From: Saccharolobus islandicus REY15A
GTDB lineage: Archaea; Thermoproteota; Thermoprotei_A; Sulfolobales; Sulfolobaceae
Direction: 5' to 3' (one strand)
Assembly: GCF_000189555.1 (NCBI RefSeq)
Contig: NC_017276.1
DNA: 64,000 nucleotides
The translations under genes and the position numbers were made by a program. Below are positions 9,728 through 58,012 of the stretch, piece after piece. Numbering within the stretch: the first letter of the stretch is position 1; each line of letters starts with the position of its first letter. The notes below the pieces were generated by a model that saw only the letters and a program-made list of their open reading frames with translations, was not told the DNA's origin and did no database searches.

Positions 9728-9775
9728 TCAGCTGGACTAGGAGTCTTCATCCATCATTTACGTCTTTCTCATCAT
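9728..9775 (-). ncRNA. Box C/D guide sRNA candidate overlapping the 3' end of the NurA paralogue
   Basis: C ATGATGA (9775-9769), 11-nt guide GAAAGACGTAA, D' ATGA, C' ATGAAGA, guide CTCCTAGTCCAG, D CTGA (9731-9728). Confidence 0.65.
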
Positions 9776-10849
9776 TAGTTCTGCCAGCTTATCGTTCATA
9801 TCTAAATAGTTTTCTCTAGCTAAGTTAAATAGTAATGCATATTTTTTTGCATCTTGTGAATTTATTTCCGAAAGCTCGTCAGCTAGTTTATTCAATAACG
9901 TAACTTCTCTAATACCTTGCATAGCCCATGTGTTCAAATATTTAATTGGTGTGAAGTCAGGTTCCTTTTCACTCAACATATCTATTCTGACTATTGGTGA
10001 TGTTATATTATACTGGTAATAGAGAGAGTATATTGAGAGTGAGTAGTTAAATGCCTTTTTATATTGGTTATAAGCCTTTGAGATTCCCTTTAGATCATCT
10101 AGTATTATCTGATTATTTATTAACGAATCCCAATTTATCCATCCTAGAAAGATTGGTTTATTAAACTCAGACTTTTCGAGTCTATATTTATACATAATAT
10201 TAGATATTATGTAATTCTCCCTTGCCTTAATCAGCGCCGGATAGCTATTTAAAAATTCCTTGATCAATATTCTATGGGAGAAGTTCTTTACTATTCCCAT
10301 GATTAATTTGTTCTTACTCTTTAATCTTCTGAGTACTGTAGAACGATATAGTGCTAACTTATCCAGCGATAAGATATTTTCTATCTCAACGTCCTCTTCA
10401 TAATATGTGGGAGGATCCACTATAGGTCCATCGATAAATATCACGTCACAATCCTCGCACTTCTCAATTAAACCAGTTTCTAAACTAAGCATAAATAGAA
10501 TGGATTTATTGGATATTACGTTCTTATCATAGTAATTCTCTATTATTTTGAAATCTTCAGCTATCTCAGACGGAACACTCTTTTTATCCTTCTTTTTCCC
10601 TAAGATCTTCACAGCTCTAGCTAGGATAAGAGTTACATCACTTAGCTCTATTTCATATTTACTTCCATCTACTGCACATGCTATGTGGTCAGAATCTATA
10701 ATCTCTTCAAGTATTCCTATTTTTAATTCCGAATTATTTGATGTAATATCGTCAAAAATCAAGTTAGTTGCCATGTTTATCTTTCCTCTCTCATCAACAT
10801 CCTTGGTAGCTAACTCATTTACCTTTTTGATTATCTCATTAATATTCAA
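9758..10849 (-). CDS. NurA-family nuclease paralogue
   Basis: CAVDGS and IFIDGP metal-ligand motifs, VRID, C-terminal LxKLAD helix where canonical NurA has LKAH; last gene of the herA-paralogue operon. Confidence 0.85.
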   Translation of the reverse strand: MNINEIIKKVNELATKDVDERGKINMATNLIFDDITSNNSELKIGILEEIIDSDHIACAVDGSKYEIELSDVTLILARAVKILGKKKDKKSVPSEIAEDFKIIENYYDKNVISNKSILFMLSLETGLIEKCEDCDVIFIDGPIVDPPTYYEEDVEIENILSLDKLALYRSTVLRRLKSKNKLIMGIVKNFSHRILIKEFLNSYPALIKARENYIISNIMYKYRLEKSEFNKPIFLGWINWDSLINNQIILDDLKGISKAYNQYKKAFNYSLSIYSLYYQYNITSPIVRIDMLSEKEPDFTPIKYLNTWAMQGIREVTLLNKLADELSEINSQDAKKYALLFNLARENYLDMNDKLAELMMRKT

Positions 10850-11535
10850 ACTTTCACCTTTATCGAAATATTTCTCTCTACAAGCATTTTCATAACCTTA
10901 ATAGCCTCTTCTAAATTATCTTTACTAATCTTTATTTCGCCTTTGTCTATTAGTATTATCAGTATGTTAATCTCATTCTCGTTTAGATTTAATTTTCCTA
11001 ACTCGTTAACGATAATCTCGTATAGTTCATTAAGGTGTTGTTTAGCTTGTATTTCGACTTCATTTAGCTTAGAAAGTGATTTCTCCTTAGGTATACTAAA
11101 AGTTTTTACATCTTTCTGAATTTTAAGAAAATGATACAAAATTTTCGCATACAATTTTAGTCTATCATTTATTTCCTCGATGTTCTTAATCTTATCGTCT
11201 ATTATCTTATTCAGATCTTGTTCTACATCCTTTTCTAAGCTGTCAATTTTTCCTTTTATCTTCTCTACGTATCTAATTATTTCTTCTGCGGAATTGAGCT
11301 TGCCTAGCCTCTCTATATCTGCTTTAATTTCCTCAAGATTATCTTCATATTTATTTAATTCGTTTATCTTCTTCTCTAAGCTCCTTAATTTCTTTAGAGA
11401 CTCCTTCAAGCTTTGTTTAGATACCTCTAATTCCTCTATCATCTCAGTAATTTTTCTATCTTCTTCTCTAAGTTTTTCTACGTCCAAATTCTGCTTATAT
11501 TGGGTCAATTTTTCTATAAAGTCAGCCAAATCCAT
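10846..11535 (-). CDS. Coiled-coil protein with small C-terminal (winged-helix-like) domain
   Basis: K/E/L/I-rich heptads over about 180 aa; LNENEINILIILIDKGEIKI C-terminus; overlaps both neighbours. Confidence 0.8.
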   Translation of the reverse strand: MDLADFIEKLTQYKQNLDVEKLREEDRKITEMIEELEVSKQSLKESLKKLRSLEKKINELNKYEDNLEEIKADIERLGKLNSAEEIIRYVEKIKGKIDSLEKDVEQDLNKIIDDKIKNIEEINDRLKLYAKILYHFLKIQKDVKTFSIPKEKSLSKLNEVEIQAKQHLNELYEIIVNELGKLNLNENEINILIILIDKGEIKISKDNLEEAIKVMKMLVERNISIKVKV

Positions 11536-14500
11536 GTTCTTCTAGAACCTCCTTTATTTCTTGAATCAATTGCATAATCTTTTGCGTGTTTCTCTCCACG
11601 TTCTCCCTCAACTTAGGTAATTCTGGACTTATCTTTTCTAACTCATTTACAATCGTCTCAATATTATTTAATTGAATACCGACCTTACTTAATGATGTAA
11701 TTTCATCTACTATTGTTCCTTTTAACTCTTCACCAACGATTGCTATGCCATTTAGTGTCTCTTTCAGTAATTTGAATAATATGAAATAAAGATTTGAGTT
11801 GTCCTCAACATGAATTGTAGCAAGTAAGTAATCGAGGTATCTTTTGAAAGACTCCGTTTCTCCCCTTTCATTTATCTCCTGAATTCTTTTCGCCAACTTA
11901 TCCATGTGTATTTTGAAATTGTCTTTAAGTTCTCGAACTATCTCACGTACTTTCTCTATTTCCTCTATTTTCTCGTTTATCTTAACATATCTCTTAGCCT
12001 TTTCCACAACTTCTAATTTCTTAGAGATTTCCTCCACGATCTTGTCCGTTTCAATTACTGATTTCTCGGTCTCTCTTAATAATTCCAGATAAATATTCGA
12101 TAGGTAGAGGTAATCATAACATAGCCTTATATCCTTATTTTCAGTGCAAGATTTCTCATATGTTTCTATGACTTCTCTCATTTCTTCAAGACTCCTTACT
12201 GCAGCTCCCCTCTTTTTAGCAGTTATGAAGTATCCATAAGCTGAGTATGGATTATCTAGTTTTTCCTTTATTTTTCGTATCTGGTCATTTATTTTCATAT
12301 AAATTGAATCTTTATTTAAATGTTTGGCGACTTCACCACTAACTATTGAAGAGTAAACTAGGAAATCTAAAGTGGGATTTTGTCCAATCTTTTTATCAGG
12401 ATTAAAAATTTGGTAAGCGAAGGTTAAAGGATTATTTTTATTATCCTTTCTTCTTGTATCTTGTGGGTTTACATAGTACATGATAGAATTAAATATAACA
12501 TCCTCCGCTTCTTGTTTGTATTTTTGTCTAATAAGTCCCGCAAATAGCTTAGAAAATGAGGACAACGAGTCTCCAGCTAAGTCTTCGAAATCTATGTAAT
12601 TAGCTCTTATCTTTATTATATAATTATTATAGAAGTAAGTAATAACGTCTTCAATAAATGTGTTTGATGTTTCTATATCCTCTAAATGGAATTGCTTACT
12701 TCCATACATTCTGAATTTCTCATTAATGATGTCATTTACTTTGTCGAACACTTCATCAGCATTTGCCATCTTAATTGAAGGGTAAAATATTATCCAATTG
12801 AACGATTGTATTAATCTCTTATTTTTAGGTATTGGGAGTTGTTTCAAATTAAGGTTATCTCTTATTTTTAGCAGTAGAGAGGATATCGAATTTTTCAAGT
12901 CACCTAGTCTTAGTTCTATGGAATCCAGTCTAATTCTACTTTGCCCATAGATCTTAGAGAATAGTAGATATAATAACTGTCTTTTCTTTGGTGTGGTGAT
13001 TTTTAGTTCGATCAAAGGTATTGATAGTTCGTCTAAAGTTTTCGACAATTCTTCCTTTCCTATTTGAGGCTCTATTAGAATAAGTCCGTGAATTATATCA
13101 TCGCTTTCTTTAATCTCTTTTATTAGACTCTTAATTTCATCCTCGTTAGACGGTTTTGCTAAAATAATTGTAATTTTGTCATTTCTCTCGACGACTTTTA
13201 AAAACCTTATGTAGTCTCTGGCTCTGTTAACACTATCTATTTTTATTCCTAGAACCTCCATAAAATATTCTACTGATTCAAGTTCCTTCTCTCTATCTGT
13301 AATATATGTATTTACGAACTGTAAAGCTTTATCTCGTATTTCCCTAGACTTGAACTCTACTACTAGTCCTCCTATATTCGTATTCGCTACGCTCTCAAAG
13401 AAGTTCCAAGATAATGCATAGGCTTCAGTTTTACTGAATAGCGTTAGTTTTTTTATATTCTCCTTTAATTTGCTTGTATCTATACTTTCGTACACTACAC
13501 TTTCTATATTATCAGATATAAATACGTGAAAGTCATCTTGATAGTATGTTAAAAGGAAGTCCTCTACGTATTCTTGTCCTTTAGGGAACATCTCAATCCA
13601 TTTTAGGTATGGTAGCAGTACTCCCTTCACTACATGACCTTCTAATTGTTTTATGATTAGTTTTTCGTCAGTGAATATTCTACTCATTAGCACTCTATAT
13701 AACTTACTTGATTCTTGAGAGTCCAATTCGTTCTCCATTTTCGTCAATGTATCTAGCTTGATGGTCTCCCCTTCTGAATTTAGGCTAATTCCTTTCTCTG
13801 ATCTAGCTAGTTCGTTGAAAATTCTATCTATATTAGGAAGATTATCGCACAATATATCGTTAAAGAACCTTACGTATTTTCTTCTTTCTTGGTCTATTAC
13901 CCAGTACGGCAAATCCATGTATTGGAGTATTTTGAAGTCCTTTACGTTAGCCATATTTAGCATGCATTTTAACATCAATAGAAACTCTAATTTAGATGGA
14001 TTTTCTATACTAACTTTCCTTATTCTTTCTAAGAGTGAAGGGTATGTCTCTGAAAATAGGTTATAAATTAATCCCCCAGTTCCAAATATTTTAGAATATG
14101 CGCTAGGAGTCATGGAAAGATATACTATTGAATTTCCGGTTGAGTTGGCTAATTCCTTTACCTTACTCCAAAAATCCTTTATCTCGCTTTGATATTGTGC
14201 AAAGTAATCTACAGAACTCTCTACCTCATCAATAAGATATACGTTATTTCTGAACGTTAATAAGTCTTCAGTTTTACTTAAAAGTTCTACAAAAGGTACT
14301 TTTATTACGCTAATATTTTTGCTTTTGGCGTATTCCTCAATAATGTCAAGGAATGTGCTTTTTCCTTGACCCCAATCGGCTACAAGGGATATTATTTCTG
14401 GGGACTGTTTAGTATTAGATATCCTGTCTAGCTCATCCTTAACCTGCTTGAAAAATCTTAGTCTATTAATGTATAATGGGTTCTCACTAATGCAAGAGAA

Positions 14501-14560
14501 AATTTGATAGATGTAAGACGAGTCAGAGGCAGTCTCACTTATTCTCTTGTAACAACTCAC
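11522..14560 (-). CDS. Large (1012 aa) P-loop ATPase with C-terminal coiled coil
   Basis: Walker A ADWGQGKST, Walker B VYLIDEVE, LLERI arginine-finger-like motif; helical/coiled-coil C-terminus; family not identified. Confidence 0.85.
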   Translation of the reverse strand: MSCYKRISETASDSSYIYQIFSCISENPLYINRLRFFKQVKDELDRISNTKQSPEIISLVADWGQGKSTFLDIIEEYAKSKNISVIKVPFVELLSKTEDLLTFRNNVYLIDEVESSVDYFAQYQSEIKDFWSKVKELANSTGNSIVYLSMTPSAYSKIFGTGGLIYNLFSETYPSLLERIRKVSIENPSKLEFLLMLKCMLNMANVKDFKILQYMDLPYWVIDQERRKYVRFFNDILCDNLPNIDRIFNELARSEKGISLNSEGETIKLDTLTKMENELDSQESSKLYRVLMSRIFTDEKLIIKQLEGHVVKGVLLPYLKWIEMFPKGQEYVEDFLLTYYQDDFHVFISDNIESVVYESIDTSKLKENIKKLTLFSKTEAYALSWNFFESVANTNIGGLVVEFKSREIRDKALQFVNTYITDREKELESVEYFMEVLGIKIDSVNRARDYIRFLKVVERNDKITIILAKPSNEDEIKSLIKEIKESDDIIHGLILIEPQIGKEELSKTLDELSIPLIELKITTPKKRQLLYLLFSKIYGQSRIRLDSIELRLGDLKNSISSLLLKIRDNLNLKQLPIPKNKRLIQSFNWIIFYPSIKMANADEVFDKVNDIINEKFRMYGSKQFHLEDIETSNTFIEDVITYFYNNYIIKIRANYIDFEDLAGDSLSSFSKLFAGLIRQKYKQEAEDVIFNSIMYYVNPQDTRRKDNKNNPLTFAYQIFNPDKKIGQNPTLDFLVYSSIVSGEVAKHLNKDSIYMKINDQIRKIKEKLDNPYSAYGYFITAKKRGAAVRSLEEMREVIETYEKSCTENKDIRLCYDYLYLSNIYLELLRETEKSVIETDKIVEEISKKLEVVEKAKRYVKINEKIEEIEKVREIVRELKDNFKIHMDKLAKRIQEINERGETESFKRYLDYLLATIHVEDNSNLYFILFKLLKETLNGIAIVGEELKGTIVDEITSLSKVGIQLNNIETIVNELEKISPELPKLRENVERNTQKIMQLIQEIKEVLEEHGFG

Positions 14561-14564
14561 ATTT

Positions 14565-16178
14565 TCACCCTTCGCTTAAAATTAAATCAATTCTTTCCAC
14601 GTTTCCAGCGTATGATCCCAACCTAGCATCCCACGGTATTCTTACCAATGCTGGACTTTTCATTATTGACATAAGCCCACTTACTATTACGTGTCCAGTC
14701 TCTAATGATGTCAAATTCCTAGTCAACGATTCTGGTAAACCTCCAGAAGCAGACATCACATACCTTACATCTTCGTGATATATTCTATGAAAGAAGAAGG
14801 TGTTAATCATCGACAATACGTATTTATCTATAAATGCAGGTCTTTGACTTACGAGAATTAAAGAAGCCCCAAATTTTCTTCCTTGGGTTGCCAATGTTAC
14901 CAATGCGTCTTTTGTCAGGTTGGCGTTTACTGGATAATCAACAGAAGGTATGTAGTTTTGTGCCTCTTCTATTACAAATCCCAAGAACCTTTGATTGCCG
15001 TTATATTTGGATTTTGTGAGATAATTGAAGATCAATCTAGTTATGTAACTCACGATAAGCTGTTTTGTAAGGACGTCTATACCTGGTGAACCCTCAGCAG
15101 AGAAGTCTATTATTCCTAAACCTCTATTCCTCCAAATCACTTCTAGTGTATTTTCAGTTAAAGATGCAGAAGAGTTGACCAGTTGTAGTCTGCTAATCAC
15201 CTTGTTTTTGAATATTTCTAGTGCACTCGCAATTGCTCTAGCCGTGCTTGTTGTTATTCCTATATCTTTATTTTGAGCCATAGTAAGGATCTCATTTCTT
15301 AGGTTCTCAATTCCTATTGCAGTTCCTAGAAGGGTATTGTACTCCTTACTATCGTGATTTGCTAGCACTTGCTCTAGGAAATTTAGTTGCAAGGTGTTAT
15401 AGGAAGCTTCTCCGTATTTTAGAGACATAATGAATTCTGATAATTCTCTAGGAGTGAATATGGACAAATCTATTGTGAGTTTAACGTCATTTTGTTCCTT
15501 AGGATCCTTTAGTATATACCTTTTTATCCAGCCTCTTCCCCTAGATACGATGTCTAGATTTGTCGAAGCTAAATCTATGTAGTCTCCATTCGCATCAATT
15601 ACAATCATCGGTAAGGCTGTGATCTTATCTCCTATTTTTATGTTGGATAGAAGCTTGATTAAATATCTCATATTATAGCTTTTTCCACTCCCTGTCTCCC
15701 CAAAAACTCCTACATGCATCGTTATCGCATTAAGGTCTAATAATAATGGTATTTCAGAACCAGCTAAAACACCGTACTCAATTAATCCTTTCTTGTTTTT
15801 TATACCATAAAACGAAAGTAGGTCTTTTTCACTCTTTATTTCTGGTAGTCTTCTTACGAAAGAACCCGGTTTAGGAGTAGTGCTATGGTCATATTTTTTT
15901 ATTAAGTGTAAAGTAGTCTTTATTATTGTATTCATATCTAGAATCTCGTATATCGATGGTTCTTTTAGTATTGACTTAGCTATATCCCCCCTTTCGTCAA
16001 AAAACTCGTTCAGAAATTCATAATTCTCAACTCTGACTAGCGAAAGTTTCTCAGAATCATCAATTAATAACAATTGCCCTATGTTTATTTCTTCGTCAGC
16101 TCTAATTAGCCCTTGCAATTCATTTGCTTCGCTTTTCTGCAGTACTATTCCTATGATCTCTCCCTTTTCCATCAACAT
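14565..16178 (-). CDS. HerA/FtsK-family ATPase (HerA paralogue)
   Basis: N-terminal HAS-barrel-like region, HVGVFGETGSGKSY, VIDANGDY, VIEEAQNY, QGRKFG, SQRP, L..L..G motifs. Confidence 0.93.
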   Translation of the reverse strand: MLMEKGEIIGIVLQKSEANELQGLIRADEEINIGQLLLIDDSEKLSLVRVENYEFLNEFFDERGDIAKSILKEPSIYEILDMNTIIKTTLHLIKKYDHSTTPKPGSFVRRLPEIKSEKDLLSFYGIKNKKGLIEYGVLAGSEIPLLLDLNAITMHVGVFGETGSGKSYNMRYLIKLLSNIKIGDKITALPMIVIDANGDYIDLASTNLDIVSRGRGWIKRYILKDPKEQNDVKLTIDLSIFTPRELSEFIMSLKYGEASYNTLQLNFLEQVLANHDSKEYNTLLGTAIGIENLRNEILTMAQNKDIGITTSTARAIASALEIFKNKVISRLQLVNSSASLTENTLEVIWRNRGLGIIDFSAEGSPGIDVLTKQLIVSYITRLIFNYLTKSKYNGNQRFLGFVIEEAQNYIPSVDYPVNANLTKDALVTLATQGRKFGASLILVSQRPAFIDKYVLSMINTFFFHRIYHEDVRYVMSASGGLPESLTRNLTSLETGHVIVSGLMSIMKSPALVRIPWDARLGSYAGNVERIDLILSEG

Positions 16179-16222
16179 TTAACATTATTTAAGAACGTTT
16201 TTAAACGATTAAGCTACTGGAA

Positions 16223-16789
16223 TTATGATGAAATGGTTGTTATCACATTAGCTATGGTTTTAAAGGCTAATCTACCATATGGGTAAATTGTTATTTTTAA
16301 ATTTGAGATTTCAGCTGCCCTTTTGACTATTTCGTAGTGATGCCTAGGTAGTATACCTATTAACCTATTGTGTAACGTACTTACTTTTATGAGGGGTTTC
16401 GTTAATAACATTATAAACTCTTCTTTCTCCTCTTTACTCATAAGTCTCGGCGGGTAATCATAATTATTAAAAGGATAGCATTCCTCTAATTCTTTAGGCA
16501 CTAAAAGCATTGGTTCCGATACTGAATAGACTTGCACTTTTTCTTCTAAATTATATTTGTTTAATGTAGAATAGGCTATTTTGTGGGTTGGCGATAATGA
16601 ATAAGGCTTAACTACTGTACAAGGCAATAACAATCCAATTTCCTTGTCCGAATTCCAATTTTCCAGGAAATAGTGATGCCATCTCATTACTACCGGGTGT
16701 TTGAATAAATCATCTGTATTATCTTTTTTAGATATTCTAGTAAAATCAGGCTTTAGATATTCATATAGTCGCTCGCATGCAGAGCTCAT
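16223..16789 (-). CDS. DUF5591-domain protein (archaeosine synthase ArcS-like domain)
   Basis: LLLPCTVVKPYSLSPTH, VSEP..LVP.ELE..YP..NYDYPP pattern characteristic of DUF5591. Confidence 0.8.
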   Translation of the reverse strand: MSSACERLYEYLKPDFTRISKKDNTDDLFKHPVVMRWHHYFLENWNSDKEIGLLLPCTVVKPYSLSPTHKIAYSTLNKYNLEEKVQVYSVSEPMLLVPKELEECYPFNNYDYPPRLMSKEEKEEFIMLLTKPLIKVSTLHNRLIGILPRHHYEIVKRAAEISNLKITIYPYGRLAFKTIANVITTISS

Positions 16790-17645
16790 TTACCTCTTCC
16801 TCTATCTCATCTTCTGGGAAACTATCTAGCTTTTTAGAATACTCTATTAATGGATTGTTAATTTCATATTCTGAATTTAAGAGTACCCAAGCATTAATTA
16901 GACTTCTATCTACCCAATTATCAAGTCTGATTGGAAACATATAGTTTGTCCTATCTAAGAATGATAATAAAGTCTCTAATTCCTCTTCACTAGCTCTCCT
17001 AGTGCCCCAAACTATTTTTCTTTCGCCAACGTATCTTTCTCCTTTGCCTGGTATAATTACCATGCCATGTATTCCCTTGATTCTATAGGTTGAGGTATCT
17101 ACACTATTAGCGTTAAAGTAGACTTTTCTCATGAATGGTGATCCAGCTCCCAATACGTGAATTTTTCCTTTCCATAATTTTCTCACTAGATGATATATTG
17201 TAACTGCGAGTTTTTTGTTTCCACTTTTATTGAGGGTAGGAGGTATAATTCCACCGAATGCCACTAGATCAGTATATTGGGAGTAGAAGTCTATGGACTT
17301 CTTTATTGATTCTACATCATAAGCGTGTATAACTGGTACTATTTTCTTATCAAAAACCGCGTACAGATACTCGAAGTATTTGTAATTTAATTCTGAAGGT
17401 TTATGACAAGGGTTTGACGGTATATCGAGGCTCATGTATTGTGTAGCATCTAAAATTTTATATTTCTCAACAACTTTTTCTATTTCAACCTTTATCCCTT
17501 TTACCATTATTTGATATCCTCCAGAGTCTACCCATGTCTCATTTTCCCAGGATAGATTATTCCAGTTTAATTGGTTAACCATTAATGGTTGTTTAAACAT
17601 CCAAACTGGGATTTTCAAGTCAGGTATACCTAGTATTATCTTCAT
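16761..17645 (-). CDS. tRNA-guanine transglycosylase (TGT)/DpdA-like base-exchange enzyme
   Basis: VDSGGYQ (D40), SLDIP (D74), PVIH, AFGG, IHVLGAG and SVDTS motifs of the TGT barrel; no CxCxxC Zn site and no PUA domain. Confidence 0.85.
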   Translation of the reverse strand: MKIILGIPDLKIPVWMFKQPLMVNQLNWNNLSWENETWVDSGGYQIMVKGIKVEIEKVVEKYKILDATQYMSLDIPSNPCHKPSELNYKYFEYLYAVFDKKIVPVIHAYDVESIKKSIDFYSQYTDLVAFGGIIPPTLNKSGNKKLAVTIYHLVRKLWKGKIHVLGAGSPFMRKVYFNANSVDTSTYRIKGIHGMVIIPGKGERYVGERKIVWGTRRASEEELETLLSFLDRTNYMFPIRLDNWVDRSLINAWVLLNSEYEINNPLIEYSKKLDSFPEDEIEEEVNELCMRATI

Positions 17646-17762
17646 TTTTCCTGGTATTGGTATTACTATCGGGTTATAACTTCATTTATAATAATACCTT
17701 ATTAGGGAGTTTATTTCCCTACATTTTAGTTAACGAAAATATCACATTTATATTATAGTATA

Positions 17763-17811
17763 TCAGGGAAACAACCCATCATCACGTGTCAGTTAAGGTT
17801 GGTTTCCTCAT
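17763..17811 (-). ncRNA. Box C/D guide sRNA, probably 23S rRNA double guide
   Basis: C ATGAGGA (17811-17805), guide AACCAACCTTAA, D' CTGA, C' GTGATGA, guide TGGGTTGTTTCC, D CTGA (17766-17763); the D guide is complementary to the conserved 23S segment GGAAACAACCCA. Confidence 0.88.
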
Positions 17812-17887
17812 ACATTATAATCATTATTTTTAGTTACTATTATCAGTTACGCTTCACTGACTGTTAGATATTAAACACCGGGTTATT

Positions 17888-21917: not shown

Positions 21918-22580
21918 ATGAGCTGGATAAGAGATACCAGTTTTCTTATGGAGTGTGTCAAGAATGGGAGCATAAAGATTGAAATTAATGTTTCTAATTA
22001 TTCCATGTCCTTTAATCTCCTTAACGGAAAATATAATTTATCGTTATTTTCATCAGATAATATTAGAATATCATATGATGGTAATAGGCTAATTGATATG
22101 CATAACTTAAGAGTTTTGAAGGATCATGATGCCAGAGTACACATTTCTAATATGATTAGTAATATCAAGGGAAATATGTCAAATGAGATAAACAACTTGG
22201 CTATAATGTATAATATTCCAGTGAAAATTCTAAATGATAACCTAGAAGCAATATTTAATCTTAATTTCTCATTGTTAAGCTGTTTAGATTACGGTTTAGA
22301 TTATTTTCTAATCCATTTGACTAATGACTTTGCAAAGCAGTCTTCTCAATTTGATGTAATAAAGAAGTTGAAATTAATACTAGCCAATGAAAAGGGATGT
22401 ATTAAGGCTATTTTAGCCTTATCTAACACCTACGAATCGGATTCTTTTTTGTTTTCTAATGATTGTATAAGTTTTCAGGTTAACGTGAATGGATTCTCTA
22501 AATTCTTGATGGATTATAGGACGCTCAATGCAAAATATACGGAAGTTATAGATTATCTTAAACAACGATTATCTCAGTAA
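21918..22580 (+). CDS. Hypothetical protein
   Basis: 220-aa ORF, 2 bp after tenA; no motif recognised. Confidence 0.65.
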
Positions 22581-23305
22581 CTAGAATACTTCTGTATGTC
22601 GTATCTGATAAACTCAAGCCCTAATTTTTGTAATAGTTCTCTTGCATGAGTAGTTAAATCCGGAGCTACGAGTATCCCTCTTACCTTGTCTTCTTTTGTT
22701 TCTCTTATGTGTAAGTAGTATCTATATAATTGTGAGACTGCACTTAATTGAGCTTTACTTCTCTTTACTTCAATTATTACGAAATTACCTTTTTTATCTA
22801 ACCCCACCAGATCTATTTTCCCATAAGGTGTATTATACTCTCTGGTTAATGGGACAAACCCTTCTTCGATCATACTGGGATTTTGAATAATAGTATTTAC
22901 TATGTCAATCTCCCTTCCTTTAATCACGAAATCCCCATCCTTTACTTCAGCTGACGTTATATAAAATACTTCTTTCAAATCTATCTCTATTACTTCTTTT
23001 GGTCTTTTTCTTTGAGCTACTATCTTCAATGGATAATCATTCATTATCTCTATTTTAGTTCCTGGTGGTTGCCAGTTTAACGGTTCCCTTTTCACACTTT
23101 CATGTATTATCACTGTACCATCCGGTTTCAATATTATTAACCTAGGAGATTCTGAGGCTACTGATTCAGCTCTTCCCTTATAATTCACCTTACATGTAGC
23201 GAAGATTACTACGAGTTCTCTATAAATTCTCTCTGTTAAGAAGGAATAAATTTCCGTATTGCTAGGATTCAGTAGTACCGAGTACACAGTATTACTTATC
23301 ATCAA
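22574..23305 (-). CDS. nucS: Mismatch-specific endonuclease NucS/EndoMS
   Basis: [33 protein letters not shown]....VIIEVKR, A.SQL.RY, RGILVAP. Confidence 0.95.
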
Positions 23306-24520: not shown

Positions 24521-25084
24521 ATGCAGAGTACCTCAGTGGAAATTTACCTAAACATTTATTCGTTCAGGCATGAGCTAGAGCACTTTACCATAGAAGAGGA
24601 GAGGGACGAGTGGTCAATCGTAAAAGATAAAGCCAATGAAAAGTATATTGTAAAAGAGTTTGCTGATTACGGTATTTTAATATATCCTGTTTATGATCTT
24701 AAAGATGATATATTATCTTCATTTTCCATCCAGCTCCCATCAGTTGGCAAACTTAAAGAAATTCTCTACACACCAGAAAAATGGATTGATAGGTTAGATT
24801 TAAGAATAAACGATAATAGTATAGAAGTCACTTCATTAATATTAGATTATTTAACCGGAATAGATATTATAAACTCGTTGATATCCAGCTTCGGCTTCCA
24901 ATATGCACAATTAGATGATAACTCCTTGATTATTAAAATACGCATATCTAGACCCTTAAATCGTACTTTATTGGATTCCCATATTAGAGCGATTTATCAT
25001 ATGCTGAAATTATACTACAGTGTGAAAAAGGCACAAGAGGAAATTGCATCTAAGGTTACTCTAAGTTATATAAAAAGCATATAA
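24521..25084 (+). CDS. Hypothetical protein
   Basis: 187-aa ORF, ATG start, upstream of the radical SAM gene. Confidence 0.7.
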   Translation: MQSTSVEIYLNIYSFRHELEHFTIEEERDEWSIVKDKANEKYIVKEFADYGILIYPVYDLKDDILSSFSIQLPSVGKLKEILYTPEKWIDRLDLRINDNSIEVTSLILDYLTGIDIINSLISSFGFQYAQLDDNSLIIKIRISRPLNRTLLDSHIRAIYHMLKLYYSVKKAQEEIASKVTLSYIKSI

Positions 25085-26161: not shown

Positions 26162-26186
26162 AAACTCTTTGCACACAATATATTAT

Positions 26187-50939: not shown

Positions 50940-51758
50940 GTGCAAAGAACTTTTATATTGACGTTGTTTACGTCCCTTAGTTTTATTATAGCTTACTATA
51001 TTTCCCTTAGTCCATTAATTTTAGCAGAATTTTCTCACGCCTTAATTGACTTCTTAACAATTACATTTTCAATTATCGCCCTAAAATTTATAGGGGAGAA
51101 TGAAGTAAGTGAGGGGAGGCTTTCTTATGGATTACATAGACTGGAAGTTATTGTTGCTATGATTAATATCTTTGCTATTATCCTCCTTTCACTTATTGTA
51201 GCATATACCTCCATAACGTCATTGTTAAAAGAGACTACTAACAGTTCTTTTGCTTTGATTATCTCGTCAGCCCTAGCATCAATTCTAACTTTCTTTGCAT
51301 CTCCTAAAGAAAAGGACAACTTGGGTAAGAGGGGATTATATGTGCATATAATATCAGACTTTCTAGGATATATAATCGGCTTTGTTATAGGTATTCTTAT
51401 CCTTATTTCCGGAATACATGAATTGGATCCCGTAGGAGCAATTATACTTGTAATACTAAATTTTGCACTTGCAATCCCATTATTAAAGGAATCTTTTTTA
51501 ATATTTATGGAAGGTTCTCCAGTGAAAATTGATAATATCATGGGAGAACTTACAAAAATTTCTCCAGATATTCATCATTTACATGTGTGGTCAATTTGTG
51601 ATCATGTAAAGGTAGCAACACTTCACGTTAAAGCATCTCCAAATCTGACTATAGCTGAGGCGGATAAGATAAGGGGTTCAATCTGTAGTCTGCTTAGAGA
51701 AAAATATGGCATTTCTCATGTAACGGTTCAGTTTGAGACGACGAATGATGACGATTAA
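50940..51758 (+). CDS. Cation diffusion facilitator, ZitB/CzcD-type
   Basis: AE..H.L.D, SYG.HR.EV, H...D.LG, HHLHVWSI, H.TVQ.E. Confidence 0.92.
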   Translation: MQRTFILTLFTSLSFIIAYYISLSPLILAEFSHALIDFLTITFSIIALKFIGENEVSEGRLSYGLHRLEVIVAMINIFAIILLSLIVAYTSITSLLKETTNSSFALIISSALASILTFFASPKEKDNLGKRGLYVHIISDFLGYIIGFVIGILILISGIHELDPVGAIILVILNFALAIPLLKESFLIFMEGSPVKIDNIMGELTKISPDIHHLHVWSICDHVKVATLHVKASPNLTIAEADKIRGSICSLLREKYGISHVTVQFETTNDDD

Positions 51759-52774
51759 TAAAACTGGCTGGGCCACCACTCAATATCTTTGTGAAGTTTA
51801 CTTCCCATTAACTTTATTATTTTTTCCCTATCCATCCTTGAAAATCTAACGTCTATATGAGCTTTTAAGAGTGGAAATGGATATCCCTTAATGCTTACTC
51901 CACTCAAATGATCCATTATCTCCTTTACTATTTTCTCATCCACTCTTCCAACCATATCTATTCTAACAACCCTCTTACCATTATCCAATCTAGTATAGAA
52001 AGTTGTATATTCCATTTTTCTTAATATCTCAAGCTCGGGTATCTCAGAAATTTTTCTGATGTCTATATTTTTGATTATAAGTTTTGAAAATCCTCTTTTT
52101 TCAGTAAACAGTTCAAAAACAGTTATGTCGGGATAGTCTGTACCAAATAAATCTCTCCCCCTACTGGTTTTAGATATCCATAAAACCTTGCCATCATATT
52201 GCTCTATTATTCTACTAACGAGAAATTGATTTAGTAGCATTAGCAAATCCCTCATTTTCCTTTCATCTTTTATGCTAATAATACTATTTATGTCGACATT
52301 CTTAACTAGCTTTAGCTCTTCATCAGAGATTTGTTGAATATCGACTTTATTACCAATCTTTTTGTTTAAACTTCCATCCATAAGAATGTAATCTCCTTTA
52401 CTACCATCCCTTAAAGCTAGTGATAATTCCAATGCCTCCATTAATAGTGATATTCTTTCTTGTGCATCGTTCCCTGGCTTGAATATACCTATTTGACCAT
52501 CCTCGCTCAATGTCTTTACTCCTTTATTATCTCCGATTACGGATTCAGCTCCTACAGCATAAACTATCCCTATTCTCATAGGTTTACTGAAAGAACCACC
52601 ATCAATAGCTACAAATTTGCATATTTCGCTTAACTCATTATCTCTAGTGTATTCAGTCCAAAACTCATTAACCTTTTCTTGTATTTCTTGCCTAAGGTAG
52701 CTAGCAATATTGTAAATCTGATTTTTTATCTCGTTGTGACTTTCCGCTAACTTATCATATATTTTTCTTATCAA
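51755..52774 (-). CDS. nurA: 5'-3' nuclease NurA
   Basis: AIDGG, LMDGS, YPFPLLKAH; last gene of herA-mre11-rad50-nurA. Confidence 0.95.
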   Translation of the reverse strand: MIRKIYDKLAESHNEIKNQIYNIASYLRQEIQEKVNEFWTEYTRDNELSEICKFVAIDGGSFSKPMRIGIVYAVGAESVIGDNKGVKTLSEDGQIGIFKPGNDAQERISLLMEALELSLALRDGSKGDYILMDGSLNKKIGNKVDIQQISDEELKLVKNVDINSIISIKDERKMRDLLMLLNQFLVSRIIEQYDGKVLWISKTSRGRDLFGTDYPDITVFELFTEKRGFSKLIIKNIDIRKISEIPELEILRKMEYTTFYTRLDNGKRVVRIDMVGRVDEKIVKEIMDHLSGVSIKGYPFPLLKAHIDVRFSRMDREKIIKLMGSKLHKDIEWWPSQFY

Positions 52775-55365
52775 GTCTCCTCCCTCACAAAACTTTTATT
52801 TCCTCTCTTTTCAACACGAATAACATAATCAGCTGCCTGGACTACCTCCTCGTCATGTGTTACCACTAATATCTGAGGTACACTTTCCTTTGCTGCCCTA
52901 ATTATCTCTATTAAGTACGCTTTTCTTTGATCATCTAAATGAATTGTTGGCTCGTCAAGAATGAAGAAGTTAGTATTACTCATCAGTGCCTTAGCTATTG
53001 CTAACCTTAAAGCTATAGATAAGGCAATTCTCTCACCTCCACTAAGCGATACTATGGGCAAAGTATCGCCGTTATTAGTGTATATTACTATATTCCCACC
53101 ACTGCCCTTTCCTCTACTAGTTTTTGGCATTATCTCCATTTCTACGTTTTTAATAGATAGATCAAATTTCGATATTATATCATTTAGATTATTTTCAATT
53201 AATTGTTTTGTTGCCATGATTATATAACTCTGTAATTTTCGTTCTCCTAATGCATCTCTAATTTTCTCCAGCTTATTAATACCATTGATTATCTTTTCTT
53301 TATCTTTTAGTTGCAATTCATAATTCTTAATTCGATTACTTATTTCCTCTATGTCTTTACCTAAACTATCCAATTCGCCCTCCACTCTACTTTTTCTGTT
53401 TTCCTTCTCCTTAAGACTGGCATTATGGACATCTAAACTCGTTTTAAGTTCATTATATTTATTTTCATCAAACTGTATGATATTTAATTTTTCCCTTAGT
53501 TTCTTAACATCTTCTTGTAGTAGCTCAACTTGTCCTATATAGTCTTCTAGTACTCCTCTTTTCTTCTTCATTTCATCCAAGATTTTTTTCTTCCTCTCTA
53601 AATCTGAAATTTTATTCTCCAGCTCTTTACGGTCTAACCCTTGTAATTCGGTTTCTAGAGCCCTCATTTCTTTTTCGATTTCTACTTTTTTCTTCTTCAT
53701 TTCATCTAACCTATTTTTTCTTCTTTCAAGTTCCTTCTCGTCATACTTAAATAGTCTCATAAACTCTTCATAATACTGTTTTAGGTCCTTTATTTCTACA
53801 TTTATTTTCTTAATTTCCTCCTCTATATCCTTTAAAGCTTCAATCCTATTATGAAGATTCTCTATTTCCTCGTTTAACTTTCTAAGTTGTTTTATTACAT
53901 TATCGTAATTTGCCTTATTATTTGAGAGTTTTCTATATTCTTTTTCAATTTTATTTAATTCATCAGTGGTTTTCTTTAATTCTTCTTCCAGTTCATTCTT
54001 ATCTAATTCTAATCGTGAAATGTAACTTTTTGCTTCTTCTACTATTTTTTGTTTGTGTTCCTCATCTAGGGGTCTTCCACATACCGGACAAGTTTCCCCC
54101 TTAACTTGACTAAGATTATTTATTATCTCATTTTTCTCAGATATTAGGCTTTCAACTTTACCTAATTGAGCTCGAAGATCAAGTTGTCTTTTTCTTTTCT
54201 CTTCCATAATTTGTTCAAGATTACTAATTCTATCTATATCTTTAGAAAACTCACTTGCGTCTTTCTCTAAACGTTCTTTTAAATTTAGTTTGGAGTCTAA
54301 ATTGGATTTCGATTTGAGATATTCTTCATGTTTTGGCTGTAATTCTTCTAGTTTTCTCTCCAATTCCTTGTATCTTAGATAATGTGGCTCAAGTTCTTTC
54401 TTTCTTTTAATAGCTTTTTCATATTCCTCAATTTCCTTTTCTAAATTAAGTATATTATTGGATATCTCTATATAACTTCTCGATAAAACTTCATATTTTT
54501 CAAATTTTAATCTAAAATTCTTTAAATTGTCAAGTTCGTTTACCTCCTTTTCAAGCTTATCCATGTTTTCCGTTTGTCTTCTTAGTTCTTCTATACTCTT
54601 GTTTAATTCATTTAATTTAGTTTCTTTTACCTTTAAGATAGTGGTCAACTCTAAGTACTGATTTCTTTTCTTCTCATAATCTTCGAATTGTTTCTTTAAC
54701 TCAGTTATTTGATTTTCCAAGTTCTTTATCTCATCCTCCAGTTTTTTCCTATCTTTTTCTAACTCCAACACTCTATTTCTCTTCTCCTCCAAGTTCTTCT
54801 TAGAATCATTATAGTCTTGTTCTATCCTGTCTAACTCTCTTAACTTGTTTTCCAAATTCTTCTTAAATTCCACTATTGGACCTCTGCTATCAATAAGCTT
54901 CTCGATTGATTCCAACTTTAGAATTTTCCCCATAATGTCTTGTAAATTCTCCAAAATTTTATCCAATTCTCCTTGTCTAACTATTATTGTTGATAGGGCA
55001 ATATCTTTATCAATACCCAGAATTTTCTCTATTTCATTAGAGACTACCGTTGCACTACGTGCAACTGGTATTTGATTCCGTATTAACCTATCTTCTGTAG
55101 TGCTTCTTATATCCCTTATTATTTCTATTTTATCTTTTTCATTAGAAAGATGTAAGGTAACGCTCGCCTTATTTGAGCCTTTTCTTATTAAGTTGTCGTT
55201 ATTTCCTCTACTATGGGTTCTAAACAAACTGAATACTATGCCATCTATTATAGAACTCTTACCTGCTCCATTTTGTCCCACTATTACATTTATTTCGCCT
55301 AGAAAGTGTATTTCACTGTGTTCATGACTTAAAAAATTAGTCAAAGTAATTTTGTCAATTCTCAT
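52771..55365 (-). CDS. rad50: DNA double-strand break repair ATPase Rad50
   Basis: GQNGAGKSS, CPVCGR zinc hook, LSGGE, ILDEPT, THD. Confidence 0.97.
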   Translation of the reverse strand: MRIDKITLTNFLSHEHSEIHFLGEINVIVGQNGAGKSSIIDGIVFSLFRTHSRGNNDNLIRKGSNKASVTLHLSNEKDKIEIIRDIRSTTEDRLIRNQIPVARSATVVSNEIEKILGIDKDIALSTIIVRQGELDKILENLQDIMGKILKLESIEKLIDSRGPIVEFKKNLENKLRELDRIEQDYNDSKKNLEEKRNRVLELEKDRKKLEDEIKNLENQITELKKQFEDYEKKRNQYLELTTILKVKETKLNELNKSIEELRRQTENMDKLEKEVNELDNLKNFRLKFEKYEVLSRSYIEISNNILNLEKEIEEYEKAIKRKKELEPHYLRYKELERKLEELQPKHEEYLKSKSNLDSKLNLKERLEKDASEFSKDIDRISNLEQIMEEKRKRQLDLRAQLGKVESLISEKNEIINNLSQVKGETCPVCGRPLDEEHKQKIVEEAKSYISRLELDKNELEEELKKTTDELNKIEKEYRKLSNNKANYDNVIKQLRKLNEEIENLHNRIEALKDIEEEIKKINVEIKDLKQYYEEFMRLFKYDEKELERRKNRLDEMKKKKVEIEKEMRALETELQGLDRKELENKISDLERKKKILDEMKKKRGVLEDYIGQVELLQEDVKKLREKLNIIQFDENKYNELKTSLDVHNASLKEKENRKSRVEGELDSLGKDIEEISNRIKNYELQLKDKEKIINGINKLEKIRDALGERKLQSYIIMATKQLIENNLNDIISKFDLSIKNVEMEIMPKTSRGKGSGGNIVIYTNNGDTLPIVSLSGGERIALSIALRLAIAKALMSNTNFFILDEPTIHLDDQRKAYLIEIIRAAKESVPQILVVTHDEEVVQAADYVIRVEKRGNKSFVREET

Positions 55366-56513
55366 AAGTTAACACCTGTTAGTCTTTTTAATATCTCATT
55401 TACTATATCTTCAGAATCAACGTTCTTTATCATTTGTAAAATTAAATTAGCCTCGTCCTCGTTGAACTTCTCGTATTTAGTAAGGTATTCGATTATTATC
55501 TTATCTAATGCCCTATCTTGCGGCAAGGTATATGTTAAGTTGTCTACACTTTGAATAGTTTCATCTTTATATATTCTATAATAAAGTGCAATATCATTTA
55601 AAGGAAGTAACTCTCTGTAAAGTAGATCCTTTCTCATTCTTTCACCTTCTACGATAATGTGTAATATTGGCTTATTGTTTTCACCTTTATTATTTTTTAA
55701 TAAATCACTTTTTATTTTCGATATGTCATTCTTCAGATTTTTTGTATTTATGGTTACAACTTTTTGTGGCCTTACTGTAGTATTTATCGTGGTAAGTGTA
55801 GGTAAGTCCTTTGAAAAGTCTATTAGGTATGCTCCTTTTCCAAATTTTTCATACCCTTCTATTTCCTCTTCTCTCATAATATCTGGAGAACCAGCTATAG
55901 CGATTATTGAACCGTCATCTTGAATAAGTCTCCACCTAGTATGCAAATGTCCTAAAGCATAATACCCAAAACCTTTAGGTAAACTTCCTAATTCCATTTG
56001 CCACGAACCATCATACGGCAATATCTGTTTTACACCTTGATGTAGTAATAGGATACTTCTACTTGACTTTGGTTTTAAAGAGGATAACGTGCTAACCAAT
56101 ACGTTTTTTGAAACTGTGGGAATATGGGGGATTCCGTATATTTCTATTTCTTTTATAATATATGGCTTATCATAATTCAAAATTTTGATTAAATCCAATT
56201 CAGTTAGAATATTATGAGGAATGATGTAACCTTTCCTCTTTGGAGTGTCGTGGTCCCCTGGTATTGAGAGAAATGGTATATTCGCATCTTTTAACTTTTT
56301 TAGGATTTTAACAGCTATTACTAATGCATTTGTAGTAGGATTCGAAACATCGAAAAGGTCTCCAGAATGTATTACTGCGTCAACACGTTCTTTAATAGCA
56401 ATGTCAATTAGTTGTGAGAAAACATCGTAAATATCCTTTTCCCTTTCTGCTAGGGAGTACTGTCTTTTTCCTAAATGAGTATCAGAAATATGTAGAATTT
56501 GTACCATCATCAA
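55362..56513 (-). CDS. mre11: DNA double-strand break repair nuclease Mre11
   Basis: HISDTHLG, SGDLFD, GDHD, LHQ, LGHLH, GSP; start probably 56510/56507. Confidence 0.97.
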   Translation of the reverse strand: MMMVQILHISDTHLGKRQYSLAEREKDIYDVFSQLIDIAIKERVDAVIHSGDLFDVSNPTTNALVIAVKILKKLKDANIPFLSIPGDHDTPKRKGYIIPHNILTELDLIKILNYDKPYIIKEIEIYGIPHIPTVSKNVLVSTLSSLKPKSSRSILLLHQGVKQILPYDGSWQMELGSLPKGFGYYALGHLHTRWRLIQDDGSIIAIAGSPDIMREEEIEGYEKFGKGAYLIDFSKDLPTLTTINTTVRPQKVVTINTKNLKNDISKIKSDLLKNNKGENNKPILHIIVEGERMRKDLLYRELLPLNDIALYYRIYKDETIQSVDNLTYTLPQDRALDKIIIEYLTKYEKFNEDEANLILQMIKNVDSEDIVNEILKRLTGVNL

Positions 56514-58012
56514 TCACCAATTTCCGTTCCAAAGTCGGCAAAGCCTTTAGCTATTCTTTCATTTTCTTCTGCTCTCTTCCATTCCCCTATCATGTCGGGG
56601 TCTGATCCAAGCAATTTTCCTTCAAACATATCTATCTTCACAACTGCAGGTAATTTTACTATTTTACCTATAATTATAGCCTCACCAACGTCCAAGGAGG
56701 ACAGTTGTTCAGCTAAATCTTCGCTTAGATTATCACTTGACTCTAAGATGTATTTTTTATCAGTAGGTTCAATTATCTTTAAAATGATCTTGTTTGTCAT
56801 TTGACTTAATATATTTTCATCTAGGCCTTTAGGCCTTTGACTTACTATTGTTAATCCAACTCCGAATTTTCTGCCCTCTCTTGCTATCCTGGACGCCCAG
56901 TACTTGGTTAATGTATTCTCGTTTTTAGACAAGAAAACGTGAGCTTCTTCTATTACGGCTATTATTGGGAATTTAAGGCCACTATTTTTGCTTCTTTTAA
57001 AATCTTTCCTAGAATCAAGGATTCTTCTTAAATAATGTGAGACTACTGCATCCATTGAGTCTTCATCTAATTGTGTTAGGCTTACAACGTTTACCTTACC
57101 TCTCTTTACTTTTTCAATTATATCTGAAGATGTAAGATCAATGACGTTTGAATACCTATCCATGAATTCTTCAAACTTATTCAGTACCTCATCCTTTGCA
57201 CTACTCTTTTTATCACTATTTCCTTGAGTTTCCAATTCGTCTCTCATTAGTTCATAAAATTGGCTATTTAGAGTAGAAAATGGTATTTGTCCTTCTTTTA
57301 GCTTTTCTCTTATCTCATTTGTTACCTTTATGAAAGCTCTTCTTAAAATTCTGTACTGTATAATTGCATTCTCTCTTATTTCTAGTAACGTAGAAAATTC
57401 CCTTGGGGTCATATAAAGAGGGTTAAGTTTAGGTTCAATACGATTTAGATTCTTTATATCGCTATCATAGTACTCTCCATGATAATCAAAGATAAGAACA
57501 GATCCACCAAGTTCAGAAATTCTTTGAGAAAGAACTGCTACTGTATTTGACTTCCCAGAACCAGTAGCTGCTAAAATAGCTAAATGTCTTGCAAAGGAAT
57601 TTATATTTAATTTAACCTCCACGTTTTTACCTATTAAGCTTCCTATTCTAATTTGGCCATCTTGCGAATAAATACTTTTTAACTCCTCATCTTCAGCCTC
57701 TCTAGCTGGGGTTCCAGCGAACGGGGGTATATCGGGCATTAAAAAGTGATTATTCATATCACATAACATTTTTACTTTAGCCTTTATATAAACGGGTATG
57801 CTATTGTTGAATTGTTTTAATCTTTGAACGATTTCTATATCATTCATATTATCATCTAGCATAGGGCTACCTCTAGTCACGTTTGTTATTAGTCCAAGGG
57901 CCTTAACGTTATCATATTCTAGAACAACATAAGTTCCTAATCTAACTGGCCTTTCAGCTAGTATCAAAGCCTCTTGTGTTGTAGCTTGACCAATTACATA
58001 ACCAATTATCAT
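56510..58012 (-). CDS. herA: DNA double-strand break repair helicase HerA
   Basis: HAS barrel, HLAILAATGSGKSN, IEEAH, EGRKFG, SQRP. Confidence 0.97.
   Translation of the reverse strand: MIIGYVIGQATTQEALILAERPVRLGTYVVLEYDNVKALGLITNVTRGSPMLDDNMNDIEIVQRLKQFNNSIPVYIKAKVKMLCDMNNHFLMPDIPPFAGTPAREAEDEELKSIYSQDGQIRIGSLIGKNVEVKLNINSFARHLAILAATGSGKSNTVAVLSQRISELGGSVLIFDYHGEYYDSDIKNLNRIEPKLNPLYMTPREFSTLLEIRENAIIQYRILRRAFIKVTNEIREKLKEGQIPFSTLNSQFYELMRDELETQGNSDKKSSAKDEVLNKFEEFMDRYSNVIDLTSSDIIEKVKRGKVNVVSLTQLDEDSMDAVVSHYLRRILDSRKDFKRSKNSGLKFPIIAVIEEAHVFLSKNENTLTKYWASRIAREGRKFGVGLTIVSQRPKGLDENILSQMTNKIILKIIEPTDKKYILESSDNLSEDLAEQLSSLDVGEAIIIGKIVKLPAVVKIDMFEGKLLGSDPDMIGEWKRAEENERIAKGFADFGTEIGD

Follow-up and report, generated by a model that had tools for sequence, protein, structure and literature searches.

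A window of 64,000 nucleotides (nt) from the archaeon Saccharolobus islandicus REY15A (contig NC_017276.1), meaning the whole stretch analyzed here, carries a minus-strand operon of six genes. It combines a DpdA-like protein of the tRNA-guanine transglycosylase (TGT) type with ATPases and a nuclease. The gene order is DpdA-like protein, ArcS2-type protein, HerA paralogue, 1012-amino-acid (aa) AAA+/KAP-like NTPase, coiled-coil protein and NurA paralogue, and the successive genes are spaced by -29, +44, +4, -14 and -4 nt, negative values denoting overlaps (Table 1). The original prediction, made from the letters of this DNA, had drawn attention to the first two genes as a stripped-down TGT coupled to a stand-alone DUF5591 protein. 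That pair lies where it was placed, but the four downstream genes (HerA, NTPase, coiled-coil protein and NurA) had been missed.

Table 1. The six operon genes, in order of transcription, and the upstream intergenic region
Feature	Position	Strand	Description
Presumed promoter region	17646..17887	.	242-nt gap separating the operon from the divergent gene at 17888; assigned by position
DpdA-like guanine transglycosylase	16761..17645	-	294 aa; TGT TIM-barrel fold, Zn-less, no PUA; putative DNA 7-deazaguanine insertase
ArcS2-type stand-alone DUF5591	16223..16789	-	188 aa; ArcS C1 core without Nt, C2 or PUA; putative modifier of inserted preQ0
HerA/FtsK-family hexameric ATPase-translocase paralogue	14565..16178	-	537 aa; PF01935 E=1e-36
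1012-aa P-loop NTPase (KAPL)	11522..14560	-	AAA+/KAP-like N-terminal domain, then long helical region; candidate sensor/regulator
229-aa E/K/L-rich protein	10846..11535	-	Probably coiled-coil; overlaps neighbours by 14 nt and 4 nt
NurA-family nuclease paralogue	9758..10849	-	363 aa; PF09376 E=2.6e-16; putative effector nuclease

In a Pfam scan the 294-aa protein matched no family at E<=0.01 and did not reach the gathering threshold of PF01702, and its match to the NCBIfam TgtA equivalog TIGR00432 was weak (E=3.8e-4, 19 bits vs. a cutoff of 350). A single-sequence search against PDB sequences returned only a spurious ATP-synthase match, which was discarded; a family profile was needed. An AlphaFold2 model built from a 59-sequence alignment reached a mean predicted local distance difference test (pLDDT) score of 92.1. 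Its top Foldseek match in the PDB was the archaeal TGT (arcTGT) of P. horikoshii (1iq8, E=1.7e-9), followed by the TGTs of Z. mobilis and human and by bacterial DpdA (7ui4), all with a probability of 1.00. Despite the lack of a Pfam match, the model makes assignment to a TGT-type (beta/alpha)8 TIM barrel secure.

The family profile alignment equates D40, D74, D183 and G131-G132 with arcTGT D95, D130, D249 and G196-G197, and the three Asp residues align with the arcTGT motifs VDSGSFQ, LDIP and FDSASY. All 59 family members keep D40-S-G-G, Q45, D74, H107, H163, G166, S181 and D183, and the base-binding G131-G132 is likewise invariant. The window protein has exactly two Cys residues (C80 and C289). 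A CxCxxC Zn motif is present in none of the 59 family members, 10 of which have no Cys at all, and in 95 of 147 more distant relatives of 340-400 aa. Nothing follows the barrel: the chain stops at residue 294, and thus has neither a PUA domain nor the C1-C2-PUA extension of arcTGT. The retained catalytic and base-binding motifs, the two cysteines and the missing Zn site and PUA domain had all been read correctly in the original prediction. The identical protein is found on 205 contigs, and its 90%-identity cluster names S. islandicus, S. shibatae and S. solfataricus. We also considered an inactive N-terminal domain of a split ArcS, and rejected it: the catalytic Asp residues are invariant, the protein scores on TgtA rather than ArcS, and it falls in the DpdA family of the PHROG database.

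The second open reading frame lies in a different frame and overlaps the first by 29 nt. This pairing is conserved in more than 15 loci, and hence is not a chance arrangement. The 188-aa product, correctly predicted to be a stand-alone DUF5591, matches Pfam PF17884 (E=6e-18, 65.6 bits vs. a cutoff of 26) over residues 34-167 of 188. It maps to positions 254-409 of the 575-position ArcS model, which is the C1 region only, and scores 70.7 bits against the ArcS equivalog NF040592 (cutoff 440). The ArcS C1 motif PC-x3-KPY-x2-S-x2-H reads PCTVVKPYSLSPTH and is invariant in 26 homologues. The protein also matches phrog_34505 (E=2.4e-73), and its relative in the PDB is AF0587 (2q07, E=2.4e-14). It has the features of ArcS2, namely PF17884 above threshold, the C1 motif, no Nt, C2 or PUA region and an adjoining gene of the DpdA type.

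DUF5591 is the catalytic core of the tRNA archaeosine synthase, the best solved structural match of the TGT-like protein is arcTGT, and the databases name the two families 'tRNA-guanine(15) transglycosylase-like' and 'archaeosine synthase, short'. Moreover, archaeosine (G+) occurs in Sulfolobales tRNA, having been found in that of S. acidocaldarius (PMC11298593). These points fit a role in RNA, in which the pair would act as a minimal, split ArcS-like pathway or as a second arcTGT pathway and supply tRNA, or some other RNA, with archaeosine or one of its derivatives. Against it, Hutinet et al. (2019; Suppl. Table 2) list for S. islandicus FolE, QueD, QueE, Gat-QueC (WP_012712064) and Arc-TGT (WP_012711831), and the S. 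islandicus copies of the TGT-like protein have other accessions (WP_012715397 and ACP34173). It follows from this mismatch that, at the species level and according to the literature, a true arcTGT, a G+ synthase and a source of preQ0 are encoded elsewhere. The scores of both window proteins lie far below the TgtA and ArcS equivalog cutoffs. The pair has neither a PUA nor any other RNA-binding domain, and the same holds for every DUF5591 partner linked to HerA/NurA. The operon partners are all DNA enzymes, and an orthologue sits in a virus with modified DNA (see below). We judge RNA modification to be improbable. The original prediction, which set the pair apart from the housekeeping G+15 pathway and proposed, as a check, locating the true arcTGT elsewhere, agrees with these data.

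The gene pair itself is of a known kind, the viral DpdA plus ArcS2. In tblastn searches of phage and virus records, the 294-aa protein matched a protein of the Sulfolobus viruses STSV1, STSV2 and STSV4 at 67% identity along its entire length, and the rudivirus 'queuine tRNA-ribosyltransferase' at 32-40%. In STSV2 the gene of the TGT homologue (STSV2_15) overlaps the next one, STSV2_16, by 23 nt; the product of STSV2_16 shares 63% identity with the window DUF5591 protein. Homologues of both proteins in STSV1/2 were listed as DpdA and ArcS (Hutinet et al., 2019; Suppl. Data 1), and the second was later renamed ArcS2 (Cui et al., 2023; PMC10516641). The original prediction described the pair correctly, and missed that it had already been described in these viruses. 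STSV2 virion DNA contains 7-carboxy-7-deazaguanine (dCDG) at 0.04% of G, and co-expression of DpdA2 and ArcS2 of phage nt-1 in E. coli yields dG+ (PMC10516641).

The DpdA1 protein of phage 9g inserts preQ0 into DNA (PMC6884629). The family phrog_887 takes in the window protein (E=1.4e-44), 9g DpdA1, STSV2 DpdA and the rudivirus protein, with 153.9, 331.5 and 191.4 bits for the first three. Comparison with 9g DpdA1 by hhalign gave a probability of 95.9% and E=5.3e-9 over 228 columns, which take in the stretch that follows the nucleophile. Structural matches in BFVD were the rudivirus TGT (template modelling score of 0.90) and phage DpdAs, among them those of nt-1 and phiST. By hidden Markov model scores the family is about equally far from 9g DpdA1 (39.8 bits) and from the arcTGT core (34.4 bits); its nearest outgroup consists of Zn-bearing PF01702 proteins of 340-400 aa (100-136 bits). 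9g DpdA1 is also ~300 aa long with neither CxCxxC nor PUA, and the stripped-down architecture is thus common to at least one validated viral DpdA. The loss of the Zn site that had been pointed out is real, but it is not unique to the window protein, while bacterial DpdA keeps the site.

In the maximum-likelihood tree, STSV DpdA is nested in the cellular Sulfolobales clade as sister to the Saccharolobus group. This nesting indicates that STSV would have captured the pair from a host. Among viral contigs, the TGT is carried by STSV and rudiviruses and DUF5591 by STSV only; HerA, KAPL (the family of the 1012-aa NTPase) and NurA had no match in any viral locus compared. Viral loci with modification genes, and without the other three, are the pattern expected if viruses copy a host mark to escape restriction. 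Judged by its sequences, the window pair is the chromosomal counterpart of the viral DpdA/ArcS2 module. The proposal that the pair may act on DNA, with DUF5591 converting the inserted base, gains from this orthology, from membership in phrog_887 and from an operon of DNA enzymes.

Homologues labelled 'MULTISPECIES [Bacteria]' were rejected as bacterial members. SIRV3-like rudivirus contigs (L006, L007, L027, L029, L054 and L055) occur in assemblies of Planomonospora alba JCM 9373, Streptomyces gamaensis, Paenochrobactrum glaciei JCM 15115 and Nocardioides koreensis JCM 16022. They look like contamination, which accounts for the NCBI name 'MULTISPECIES: tRNA guanosine transglycosylase family protein [Bacteria]'.

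The remaining operon genes encode two ATPases, a small protein and a nuclease. The HerA paralogue has intact Walker A (GETGSGKS) and Walker B (VIEEAQ) sequences in its translation and matches PADLOC HerA models with E down to 1e-28. It scores 94.6 bits against the NCBIfam family HerA_Thermprot (cutoff 800) and is 25% identical to the canonical HerA of the window; by these measures it is not the HerA of double-strand break (DSB) repair. The NurA paralogue had no match to the NCBIfam NurA equivalog, on which the canonical NurA (51755..52774) scores 456, and its motifs D61-G-S, E124 and D140-G are conserved in 12 relatives. The canonical DSB-repair operon lies at 51755..58012 on the minus strand and encodes HerA (500 aa), Mre11 (383 aa), Rad50 (864 aa) and NurA (339 aa), with equivalog scores of 884.6, 539.8, 764.9 and 456, at or near the thresholds. 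The window thus holds two HerA-NurA pairs.

The 1012-aa NTPase has intact Walker motifs and matches PF07693 (KAP_NTPase) weakly (E=8e-5, residues 47-106). Its AlphaFold2 model (pLDDT of 85.8) gave Foldseek matches for the N-terminal AAA+ domain only (RFC, DnaA and Hda, E ~1e-4). The protein family was found in Sulfolobales only, and its N-terminal ATPase is homologous to the N-terminus of 1421-aa giant proteins in related clusters described below; the 1478-aa protein of locus L037 showed no significant similarity to it. The 229-aa protein matched no Pfam family, is probably a coiled coil from its composition, and has weak matches to the coiled-coil parts of LmuB/JetC. Its position is conserved in all six-gene loci, at 26-58% identity.

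The six-gene cassette is present with the same flanks in Saccharolobus strains, S. tengchongensis, Acidianus hospitalis, a Sulfuracidifex-like genome and a Sulfolobaceae metagenome-assembled genome (MAG). S. tengchongensis is the host species of STSV. Its 2024 genome (CP146016, L059) carries the full cassette, with 80% identity for the DpdA-like protein and 66% for DUF5591, so that host genes could contribute to dCDG in STSV2 DNA.

The tree of the TGT-like protein roughly tracks taxonomy, with Sulfolobales, Ignisphaera/Desulfurococcales and Thermoproteales. Outside Sulfolobales, the gene adjoins HerA and/or NurA of other subfamilies in Thermoproteaceae, Caldivirga, a Desulfurococcales MAG (in the order TGT-DUF5591-NurA-HerA-1478 aa), Njordarchaeota and a Conexivisphaera-like contig. 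These linkages span at least three HerA subfamilies in Thermoproteales, Desulfurococcales, Conexivisphaerales and Njordarchaeota. Zn-bearing relatives show the same association. In two loci (L065/66) a 1421-aa ATPase, HerA and NurA lie divergent from TGT-DUF5591, and a third (L078) has the order TGT-NurA-HerA-1429 aa. The L065 HerA is 34% identical over its full length to that of the cassette, and the L065 TGT matches the PADLOC DpdA model (E=6.8e-13).

Two observations on these loci are recorded here. The L065/L066 cluster at 14403-17089 has genes of the MJECL32/MJECL33 families nearby. Such genes occur on an extrachromosomal element of Methanocaldococcus, a hint that the setting is mobile. 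An archaeal DUF5591-TGT-HerA-KAPL cluster is present in a contig binned as the planctomycete 'Thermogutta sp.' (L018, NZ_JBAMME010000175.1); this contig is probably mis-binned, because its TGT groups with Conexivisphaera in the tree.

The fold, the catalytic residues, the viral orthology, the structure and conservation of the operon, the repeated linkage of TGT to HerA/NurA and the viral gene content are established. We tentatively favour, at a likelihood just short of even, the reading that the operon is a Dpd-like modification-restriction system of which viruses carry only the modification half. The TGT-fold enzyme, with D183 as nucleophile and D40 as general acid/base, would excise guanine from double-stranded DNA and put in preQ0 supplied by the FolE/QueD/QueE/Gat-QueC pathway of the cell. 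The DUF5591 protein would then turn the nitrile of the DNA-bound preQ0 into an amidine, a lysine adduct or a carboxy derivative (e.g., dG+ or dCDG), and the resulting base would mark the host chromosome as self. HerA, the AAA+/KAP-like NTPase, the coiled-coil protein and NurA would form the restriction half, which would load on or pump unmarked DNA and degrade it. STSV and rudiviruses would carry modification genes to disguise their own DNA. The overall logic would be that of the bacterial Dpd restriction-modification system, with other restriction parts.

Several findings weigh against a modification-restriction system. They concern, first, the chemistry: in the literature searched, 7-deazaguanine in archaeal chromosomal DNA is not mentioned (it is reported for bacteria, phages and archaeal viruses only), and Cui et al. 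(2023) state that S. tengchongensis encodes no protein of the Q/G+ (preQ0) pathway (PMC10516641). The ArcS of T. kodakarensis is inactive without its radical-SAM partner RaSEA (PMC11298593), and a RaSEA-type partner was looked for near the operon and not found. In favour of the reading, on the other hand, the T. kodakarensis enzyme accepts the bare preQ0 nucleoside or nucleotide as substrate (PMC11298593), which means that no RNA context is needed. A further point against it is that no PADLOC model matches the TGT-like, DUF5591, KAPL or NurA protein of the window.

A second group of findings concerns inheritance. The cassette is vertically inherited at a fixed locus among housekeeping-type genes, and the TGT-like protein and HerA diverge at the rate of the flanking genes, which is unusual for a defence island. 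These features would suit a role in DNA repair or genome maintenance, in which the pair replaces damaged guanines or marks break sites and a specialised HerA-NurA resection machinery acts as a second end-processing pathway. End resection in archaea is carried out by HerA-NurA, the cassette is surrounded by non-defence genes with a NucS homologue close by, and in L065/66 TGT-DUF5591 is placed between NurA-HerA and Rad50/Mre11-like genes. However, the complete canonical HerA-Mre11-Rad50-NurA operon is already present in the window, and in the viruses the transglycosylase occurs without any resection gene. The Rad50-like protein of L065 matches the defence ABC ATPases mad3, LmuB and PbeC. Within the cassette, KAPL, the coiled-coil protein and NurA evolve fast, outpacing the TGT-like protein, HerA and the flanking genes. 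Furthermore, the family was not seen among the named matches in S. acidocaldarius or Metallosphaera, and so would be dispensable; for S. acidocaldarius, which has no named homologue of either the TGT-like or the 1012-aa protein, this negative is weak, as most matches are unnamed. A repair function is unlikely in our judgement, though it deserves to be kept in mind.

The third group concerns linkage. In Aramenus the pair is at the same locus and the other four genes lie elsewhere in the genome, and in Sulfurisphaera javensis the modification and HerA-NurA modules are unlinked. In the Ignisphaera clade (L004, L020, L023-L026 and L030-L036) the TGT-like gene has no DUF5591, HerA or NurA neighbour. 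In Ignisphaera/Desulfurococcales it stands in a conserved, housekeeping-like neighbourhood, divergent from the genes of a 594-aa radical SAM protein (Zn_ribbon_HMPTM) and an AAA ATPase and adjoining that of ribonucleotide reductase, and the TGT-like protein may have a different role there. Together with the TGT that rudiviruses carry alone, these loci would agree with a DNA mark that works independently of HerA-NurA, for protection from other nucleases or CRISPR, for thermostability or for epigenetic regulation, the linkage in Saccharolobus being incidental. Phage DpdA modifications do protect against many unrelated restriction enzymes (PMC6884629). Yet the adjacency of TGT to HerA/NurA recurs, with differing HerA/NurA subfamilies and gene orders, in at least six lineages, and is therefore not due to chance. 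We hold an independent mark to be decidedly unlikely, and retain the modification-restriction reading as the working one.

A few other features of the window were recorded. An Orc1/Cdc6 replication initiator is encoded at 686-1873 (+; TIGR02928, 245 bits), and the window is probably near a replication origin. A NucS/EndoMS mismatch endonuclease homologue lies at 22574-23305 (-), five genes upstream of the operon; the call rests on PF21003/PF01939 in the equivalent gene of locus L001. A radical SAM/SPASM protein of family TIGR04084 (25109-26161, +; 617 bits) is flanked by genes without a family at 24521-25084 and 26136-26882, and this trio, syntenic across Sulfolobales, may be a peptide-maturation cassette. 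The radical SAM protein was rejected as a RaSEA partner because it belongs to an unrelated SPASM-domain family.

These data suggest a wider, and still more tentative, proposal: (i) the chromosomes of Sulfolobales, those of S. islandicus and S. solfataricus among them, may themselves contain a 7-deazaguanine derivative, written by a Zn-less DpdA and ArcS2 and read by HerA, the AAA+ NTPase and NurA; and (ii) this system may be one branch of an old, archaea-wide TGT-NurA-HerA-giant-ATPase family. We place the chance of the whole proposal somewhat below even. In the literature searched there is no description of the vertically inherited chromosomal form in model Sulfolobales, nor of the repeated association, in various archaea, between this TGT clade and HerA-NurA-giant-ATPase modules. 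If true, no deazaguanine restriction-modification system would have been known from archaeal cells before this one, which would be built from a HerA-NurA paralogue pair. It would identify the long-unexplained 'tRNA' transglycosylase genes of rudiviruses and STSV as copies of a host self-mark, explain the puzzling origin of STSV2 dCDG and give a role to the 'extra' HerA/NurA genes of Sulfolobales. The reading is directly testable, as genes of S. islandicus can be knocked out and viruses (SIRV2 and STSV2) are available in culture.

Compared with the tRNA enzymes, the window TGT shares with arcTGT (TgtA) the TIM-barrel fold, the three Asp residues and the GG base-binding motif, and the DUF5591 protein is the C1 domain of ArcS. 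In contrast to arcTGT and ArcS-RaSEA, the window TGT has no Zn site and no C1/C2/PUA domains, its partner has no Nt, C2 or PUA, RaSEA is not nearby, and both proteins fail to approach the equivalog cutoffs. The STSV1/2/4 module is alike in its level of identity, protein sizes, overlapping genes, ArcS C1 motif and Zn-less TGT. It differs in that the window pair belongs to the chromosome, where its locus is conserved and syntenic and the genes of HerA, the 1012-aa NTPase, the coiled-coil protein and NurA come next, whereas the viral pair has none of those four genes and lies near thymidylate synthase and DNA methyltransferase genes. 9g DpdA1, alike in family, length and architecture, is only ~20% identical to the window protein, and phage 9g encodes its own FolE/QueD/QueE/Gat-QueC and no DUF5591.

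From the canonical HerA-NurA pair of DSB repair, the operon pair differs in the low score of its HerA and the absence of an equivalog match for its NurA. The HerA/FtsK-anchored capture and BRC systems (PMC10853773; PMC12839542) likewise combine a HerA translocase, an ORC/AAA+-like NTPase and a nuclease. HerA with TGT was earlier predicted as a defence combination in BRC systems, and some BRC loci include a TGT for which a role in marking self DNA was proposed (PMC12839542). Compared by description, only HerA and TGT are common to BRC and the window operon, which has a NurA nuclease and DUF5591, is archaeal and is vertically inherited; PglZ, DUF6079 (BrxC-like), DUF4007, STAND and GNAT were absent from Pfam and PADLOC scans of the six operon products. 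The same scans gave no match to ParB-like DpdB, DUF328 DpdC or any other Dpd protein (DpdD-K). Bacterial Dpd (dpdA-K; Thiaville et al., 2016; Gedara et al., 2023) has a DpdA that contains large insertions as well as a CXCX2CX22H Zn site. The window TGT gave no match to PF23859 or to the DpdA models of PADLOC. The second enzyme of the window operon is DUF5591 and its putative restriction half consists of HerA, NurA and the AAA+ NTPase. In proposed logic, however, the two are alike: preQ0 insertion by a TGT-family enzyme, a second enzyme, and linked ATPase and nuclease genes for restriction.

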